Part shown: positions 35,000-35,150 of the stretch, piece by piece | Layout of the letters: each line of letters starts with the position of its first letter | How positions within the stretch are numbered: position 1 is the first letter of the stretch | NCBI RefSeq assembly: GCF_000009045.1 | Contig: NC_000964.3 | Location: forward strand, 1,860,001 to 1,924,000 | DNA: 64,000 nucleotides | Direction: 5' to 3' | From: Bacillus subtilis subsp. subtilis str. 168 | GTDB lineage: Bacteria; Bacillota; Bacilli; Bacillales; Bacillaceae | Notes under the pieces: generated by a model | What the model saw: only the letters and a program-made list of their open reading frames with translations | Database searches by the model: none | What the model was told of the DNA's origin: nothing | Translations under genes and position numbers: made by a program

Positions 35000-35150
35000 G
35001 GTATCGCAACCTTTAAACAGTATTGGAGTATCCAGCAGACAAAACGAACGAGTGGAACCGTATTTTGTCAGCGAACACTTCAAGAAGTGGGGAAGCTTAG
35101 GAATGCCAATGGGTAAGATGTATGAAACCGCGCTAACGACGGTAGAGGGA
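35000..35150 (+). pseudogene. Remnant of a GH11 endo-xylanase C-terminus
   Basis: [21 protein letters not shown] /+1 nt/ [28 protein letters not shown]. Confidence 0.85.

Follow-up and report, generated by a model that had tools for sequence, protein, structure and literature searches.

Genomic context of the interval between xylB and yncB

The locus described here lies in a window of 64,000 nt (the whole stretch of DNA analysed), corresponding to positions 1,860,001–1,924,000 of the single contig (4,215,606 bases) of Bacillus subtilis 168, and coordinates are positions within this window unless another reference is named. The xyl region of B. subtilis, the model Gram-positive bacterium, is widely used as an inducible expression system. 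The gene order is xynP, xynB, xylR (minus strand), xylA, xylB, the fossil of a GH11 xylanase gene, yncB (minus strand), yncC and an alanine racemase gene. Two genes from the ORF list border the fossil. On its left, xylB (33396–34895, plus strand) codes for an intact xylulokinase of 499 amino acids, 90–95% identical to the XylB proteins of the subtilis clade. On its right, the convergent yncB (35378–36013, minus strand) codes for a thermonuclease-like protein of 211 amino acids, and in B. spizizenii and other species its orthologs adjoin the intact GH11 gene. The 482 bases separating xylB from yncB hold no long ORF. A second, decayed YncB-like thermonuclease sequence is found just upstream of xynP (26657–26944, minus strand; 42.6% identity to YncB residues 93–193, tblastn E-value 5e-9), so that a thermonuclease gene on one side and its decayed paralog on the other enclose the xyn/xyl block.

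Identification of a fossil GH11 gene

A preliminary description of this DNA had reported, directly after xylB, about 50 codons of a GH11 xylanase carrying a single frameshift and retaining the catalytic Glu codon at 35145. Translation bears out both points: the string consists of piece A (35000–35062, plus strand), whose 21 codons correspond to residues 163–183 of the intact GH11 protein, and piece B (35067–35150, plus strand), whose 28 codons correspond to residues 185–211, with one extra T at the frameshift site between them (35063–35066, placed from the alignments) and a GAG codon at 35145–35147. The three-frame translation has stops preceding both pieces, and the frame of piece B runs on as SLDL before ending in a stop. 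The alignment further indicates that the fossil extends beyond 35000–35150, from the xylB stop (34895) to the terminator (~35232), that is over some 340 bases collinear with the intact locus of other species.

Both pieces match the Pfam GH11 profile PF00457 (24.3 bits, E-value 2.9e-5 and profile positions 120–140 for piece A; 17.7 bits, E-value 0.0031 and positions 142–168 for piece B), and the matched segments are adjacent in the profile and lie in adjacent frames. Since each piece scores below the family cut-off of 27 bits, the assignment relies mainly on the comparison with orthologs. When the B. spizizenii ortholog was searched by tblastn against the whole 64-kb window, the GH11 match was significant (E-value 4e-11), and in blastn comparisons the fossil core is 86.5–93.6% identical to the loci of sister species (E-values 5e-49 to 3e-64; 87–94% identity to subtilis-clade orthologs). 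A chance match is ruled out by these E-values together with the collinearity. At the protein level, the two pieces are identical to residues 163–211 of the 232-residue xylB-linked GH11 enzyme of sister species at 45 of 48 positions (19/21 for piece A and 26/27 for piece B) and to a pumilus-clade protein at 42 of 48 (19/21 and 23/27), compared with only 19 of 44 (10/17 and 9/27) for the XynA of B. subtilis 168 itself. The fossil is thus of the B. pumilus type rather than of the type of the resident XynA, as first proposed.

Intact orthologs and closest known enzymes

A DNA search of 40 relatives with positions 34896–35240 returned split matches in several genomes of the same genus, the two halves being separated by ~540 extra bases. 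The loci concerned hold an intact ORF of 231–235 amino acids directly after xylB, which is present in B. spizizenii TU-B-10, B. stercoris D7XPN1, B. mojavensis ATCC 51516 and five other species of the subtilis clade. The B. spizizenii protein (P0001) contains a full GH11 domain (224 bits, profile positions 2–178) preceded by an N-terminal hydrophobic leader. Its closest solved structure is the family 11 xylanase 1IGO, to which it is nearly identical over residues 28–230 (E-value 9e-132). The 1IGO enzyme is from ‘Bacillus subtilis B230’, B. pumilus XynA being its classic relative. The 49 codons of the fossil read like 1IGO except for the frameshift, an additional Thr and the substitutions R to Q, V to I and E to G; the fossil differs from it in keeping ~49 of 232 codons, with no start, signal peptide or nucleophile Glu.

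Two GH11 genes, xynA1 (699 bp) and xynA2 (642 bp), are carried by B. spizizenii S3 according to a 2026 paper (PMC13469387). With its 232 amino acids, xynA1 equals in size the 232-residue xylB-linked genes of other subtilis-clade species, while the TU-B-10 copy has 235 residues from the start chosen here; the size of xynA2 fits a XynA-type gene. B. pumilus XynA, the 1IGO enzyme and, by gene length only, the xynA1 of B. spizizenii are orthologs of the intact gene. PMC13469387 mentions neither a linkage of xynA1 to xylB nor a remnant in B. subtilis, and our literature searches found no description of this remnant. The XynA of B. subtilis (213 amino acids; G000 2054605–2055171) belongs to the same family and has the same fold and acid/base Glu motif, but is an intact paralog encoded elsewhere in the genome that shares 55% identity with the intact xylB-linked enzyme, and it presumably made the second xylanase dispensable. 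The decay of the xylB-linked copy explains why B. subtilis has a single GH11 xylanase where B. spizizenii, B. stercoris and B. mojavensis have two.

Lesions and surviving features

The lesions were mapped by gapped alignment of positions 34880–35245 to the B. spizizenii locus (L006), and the aligned blocks were confirmed by blastn. Relative to B. spizizenii, a 23-bp gap follows the xylB stop immediately. What is left of the xylB–GH11 intergenic region forms two blocks on the plus strand: 34896–34964, aligned to L006 745–851, and 34965–34998, aligned to L006 932–965 with 88.6% identity. Between them (34964/34965), a deletion of 75–80 bp has removed part of the intergenic, presumed promoter, region. 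The second block ends at the left edge of the largest lesion, a 535-bp deletion between 34998 and 34999 (L006 966–1500 absent), which took with it the AGGAGG ribosome-binding site, the ATG, the signal peptide and ~162 codons, including the strand with the nucleophile Glu. Within the surviving codons, the frameshift (+1 T, 35063–35066) arose where the ancestral TCT reads TTCT in environmental contigs and TTTT in B. subtilis 168, and a duplicated ACG within 35136–35141 (+3) adds a Thr to piece B. Piece A carries the substitutions R to Q, found in all four B. subtilis-type sequences, and V to I, private to B. subtilis 168, and piece B an E to G at 35094–35096. A 108-bp deletion between 35151 and 35152 (L006 1650–1758 absent) has taken away the end of the gene (the last ~25 codons with their stop) and some of the 3′ UTR, and the same junction occurs in the environmental contigs L165–L167. 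The residue of the xylanase gene 3′ UTR follows (35152–35196, plus strand), aligned to L006 1759–1800 with 82% identity, and leads into a terminator hairpin (35197–35232, stem 35197–35218) for which the terminator scan, a homologous site in B. spizizenii and a predicted fold of −14.5 kcal/mol agree.

The GAG at 35145–35147 aligns with the Glu of the TVEG motif in orthologs and of ATEG in the resident XynA, and the YQS expected after it is deleted. Catalytic residues are presumably of the E78/E172 type, with the nucleophile in the EYYIVD strand and the acid/base Glu in the EGYQS motif. The acid/base Glu is therefore kept, and the nucleophile Glu, start codon, ribosome-binding site and secretion signal of a working enzyme are lost. 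The GH11 domain is incomplete as well, covering positions 120–168 of a profile of ~178 and being split over two frames. With ~49 of 232 codons left and no start codon, signal peptide or nucleophile Glu, the remnant cannot make an enzyme. The intact ancestor was a gene for a secreted, single-domain GH11 endo-xylanase, and 34896–35232 is its wreck in situ, produced by three deletions (75–80, 535 and 108 bp), a +1 frameshift and a +3 insertion.

Age of the loss

An exact 26-base string spanning the 535-bp junction occurs in three metagenome contigs, which are 98.5–99.0% identical to the window over 5–13 kb and hence come from strains other than B. subtilis 168. They contain the fossil core (L165 7263–7415, L166 2488–2640 and L167 3322–3474) and share every structural lesion with B. 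subtilis 168, which indicates that the loss is old within B. subtilis and not a laboratory artefact. Over the 153-bp core, the environmental contigs differ from B. subtilis 168 at 5–7 positions, and between B. subtilis 168 and L165 point differences amount to ~3.3% in the core against ~1.2% in the flanks. Some changes are private, such as the TGG to TGA stop in the three environmental contigs and the GAA to GGA change in B. subtilis 168; CGG to CAG (Arg to Gln) and the two small insertions are the only ones that all four B. subtilis-type sequences have and the orthologs lack. In a tree of the xylA–xylB locus, B. subtilis 168 pairs with B. stercoris, a holder of the intact gene (support 91/98). 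Together with the common lesions, this dates the death of the gene between the separation from B. stercoris and B. spizizenii and the rise of today's strain diversity; the gene was destroyed before strains ~1–1.5% apart diverged, and the sequence has drifted since.

Distribution and repeated loss in Bacillus

The sample of the genus comprised 49 species representatives, grouped by the identity of their XylB to that of B. subtilis 168. In the pumilus clade (XylB 63–69% identical), an intact GH11 gene is found directly after xylB in all 16 genomes, and no XynA-type match was obtained in any of the 16. The subtilis clade (XylB at least 90% identical) is far more varied: among its 17 genomes, 8 have an intact gene, one (G004) has a full-length copy with 4 stops (L049), 5 have deletion fossils and 3 (G002, G014 and G042) have no trace of GH11 after xylB. 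All intact copies lie directly after xylB (24 of the 24 genomes holding the gene), as do all the fossils. An intact xylanase after xylB, which the preliminary description suggested looking for in related Bacillus, is thus present in 8 subtilis-clade and 16 pumilus-clade representatives. In the licheniformis-like clade (9 genomes, XylB 58–62% identical), no trace of GH11 was detected after xylB at a tblastn E-value of 0.1 or below, and the gene may either have been lost there or never have been held. One holder of an intact copy, G020 (L162, G020:C1:1891400–1894415), is unusual in that its XylB matches residues 99–499 only, the DNA upstream is unlike the xylA of other species and the end branch measures 0.84, which looks like a local rearrangement beside the intact GH11 gene.

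The deletion borders of the fossils were compared in the coordinates of locus L055. In B. subtilis 168 the deletions cover 3842–3916, 3951–4485 and 4638–4743; the G010 fossil (L011) has a single deletion (3803–4463), as does that of G054 (L137; 4154–4663), and two each are seen in G013 (L012; 3750–4450 and 4642–4774) and G016 (L017; 3838–4101 and 4321–4690). The borders differ among species for all deletion fossils, and judged from these sequences the wrecks in G004, G010, G013, G016 and G054 are independent of one another. The terminator hairpin is kept in every fossil locus examined.

Mapped on the xylAB locus tree, the GH11 gene has undergone at least 7 changes of state. At least 7 loss events in the 17 species of the subtilis clade thus stand against none in the 16 species of the pumilus clade, which have this copy only, a contrast that is descriptive rather than a statistical test, since the genomes are related. 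A XynA-type gene is present in all subtilis-clade genomes except G020. In the genomes searched, every subtilis-clade species that lacks a working xylB-linked gene keeps a XynA-type GH11, and the pumilus clade, with the xylB-linked copy only, has never lost it; from this we infer that the likely cause of loss would be redundancy with the unlinked XynA-type enzyme. The argument is a correlation across related genomes, which are not independent samples. The pattern is a clean natural example in which one of two redundant secreted enzymes has been lost repeatedly and independently.

Transcription and present role of the remnant

The hairpin at 35197–35218 is followed by a T-run on the plus strand and has a T-rich tail on the minus strand, and according to the terminator scan it is the sole terminator-like site between xylB and the convergent yncB. 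In B. spizizenii, the same scan found no such site between xylB and the GH11 gene and one after the latter, so that read-through from xylAB into the ancestral gene would have been possible. A consensus scan found no promoter-like site on the plus strand either between xylB and GH11 in B. spizizenii or in the remnant, which is weak evidence either way. The hairpin, once the xylanase’s own terminator, would now end the xylAB message and probably that of yncB too.

Contigs assembled from the RNA libraries of three studies (4144, 4147 and 4224 nt) run unbroken across the fossil, from ~31,850 to ~36,000–36,050; being assembled contigs, they give no strand, transcript ends or level and may include DNA, and they leave transcription of the plus strand unproven. 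Their own ends lie just upstream of xylA and at the start of yncB, as if convergent transcripts from xylAB and yncB, which would meet at the terminator, had been joined in the assembly.

On this evidence, the remnant is best read as a plain pseudogene relic carried as an untranslated tail, to which we attach a probability of about 95%, and nothing that was found contradicts this reading. It would now have no function of its own and would ride at the end of the xylAB transcript as far as the retained bidirectional terminator, shared with yncB. It is an ordinary pseudogene, involving neither a new mechanism nor a new family; its value is that the 3′ tail of xylAB can be understood as a dead xylanase gene whose terminator would now serve the operon, which tidies the annotation of the interval.

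One point to weigh against the pseudogene reading is that the same C-terminal 50 codons or so, together with the terminator, have survived repeatedly, in B. subtilis 168, G010 and G013. Retention of codons ~160–212 in three lineages could hint at constraint, and if the segment were kept as a functional 3′-UTR module, its RNA would protect the xylAB message or insulate it against the convergent yncB transcript at the shared terminator. The breakpoints around these codons differ among the three lineages, and G016 and G054 have lost that part of the gene; we regard such a module as very improbable. Co-option in a broader sense, whether of the RNA as a 3′-UTR element that stabilises or spaces the xylAB message, of a small protein or of an antisense product, is more doubtful still. 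The independence of the three fossils that keep ~codons 160–212 and the terminator speaks for it, as does the coverage of the region by the RNA-library contigs, yet the segment itself is deleted in G016 and G054, everything is lost in three further species, and the core differs more between B. subtilis 168 and L165 (~3.3%) than its flanks (~1.2%). No Rfam family was found in 34400–35600 either, the sole match (E-value 0.63) being meaningless. As to protein products, the candidates are a 37-codon ORF on the plus strand (35052–35165) and an 83-codon ORF on the minus strand (34937–35188). The former is broken by the TGG to TGA change in all 3 environmental contigs. No stop interrupts the latter in any of the four B. 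subtilis-type sequences, yet strains ~1.2% apart differ at 5 of its residues, and the intact genes have a comparable open frame on their antisense strand; the ORF is probably an artefact of codon structure.

Origin of the fragment and of the xylan module

The pseudogene reading implies decay in place; alternatively, transformation or recombination could have brought B. pumilus-like DNA from outside to the site after xylB. Natural competence is a trait of B. subtilis, and the fragment is closer to B. pumilus XynA than to the resident XynA, but its DNA is 94% identical to that of B. spizizenii and ~75% to that of the pumilus clade, the loci of sister species are collinear with it in their intergenic flanks and terminator, and the locus tree sets B. 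subtilis 168 next to B. stercoris, whose intact gene occupies the same position, so that an import of this kind is scarcely credible. That the fragment is a partial duplicate of the resident xynA, also a GH11 gene, is refuted by the identity figures (19/44 to XynA against 45/48 to the xylB-linked orthologs), and the DNA search reported no match to the xynA locus.

With decay in place as the preferred reading, the proposal that the xynPB–xylR–xylAB cluster once included its own endo-xylanase is supported by the intact GH11 genes after xylB in 8 + 16 species, with flanks and terminator that align to the remnant. The block xynP–xynB–xylR(−)–xylA–xylB–GH11 is collinear with the window in two pumilus-clade genomes, and the one licheniformis-like genome compared has xylR–xylA–xylB only. 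In the ancestor shared by the subtilis and pumilus clades, GH11 would have stood sixth in this block.

The accompanying suggestion of a possible acquisition of the cluster as one complete xylan module is not demonstrated by the data. The GH11 protein tree has the form that vertical descent predicts: the Bacillus sequences group together (support 93) and split into the subtilis and pumilus clades (88 and 100), and the Paenibacillus and clostridial enzymes fall outside. No xylB was found near GH11 among the non-Bacillus loci examined. The GC content of the block (38.0%) is like that of its 20-kb flanks (~39%; genome 43.5%), which makes composition uninformative about import. For the genes next to the block in a pumilus-clade genome, the homologs in B. 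subtilis 168 lie at distances of 16 kb and 130 kb, which points to the same broad region with other immediate neighbours and gives no clear sign of mobility. The simplest reading, and the one favoured by the data, is that of an old resident six-gene module whose last gene has been repeatedly lost; the data lend no support to an earlier horizontal acquisition of the whole module, which may nonetheless have taken place.

The enzyme of Paenibacillus wynnii (L059 4001–4693) branches immediately outside the Bacillus group in the GH11 tree; it is 84% identical to that of B. spizizenii, compared with 76–82% for the pumilus-clade orthologs, and is not linked to xylB. From its sequence, this gene may possibly reflect a transfer between genera.
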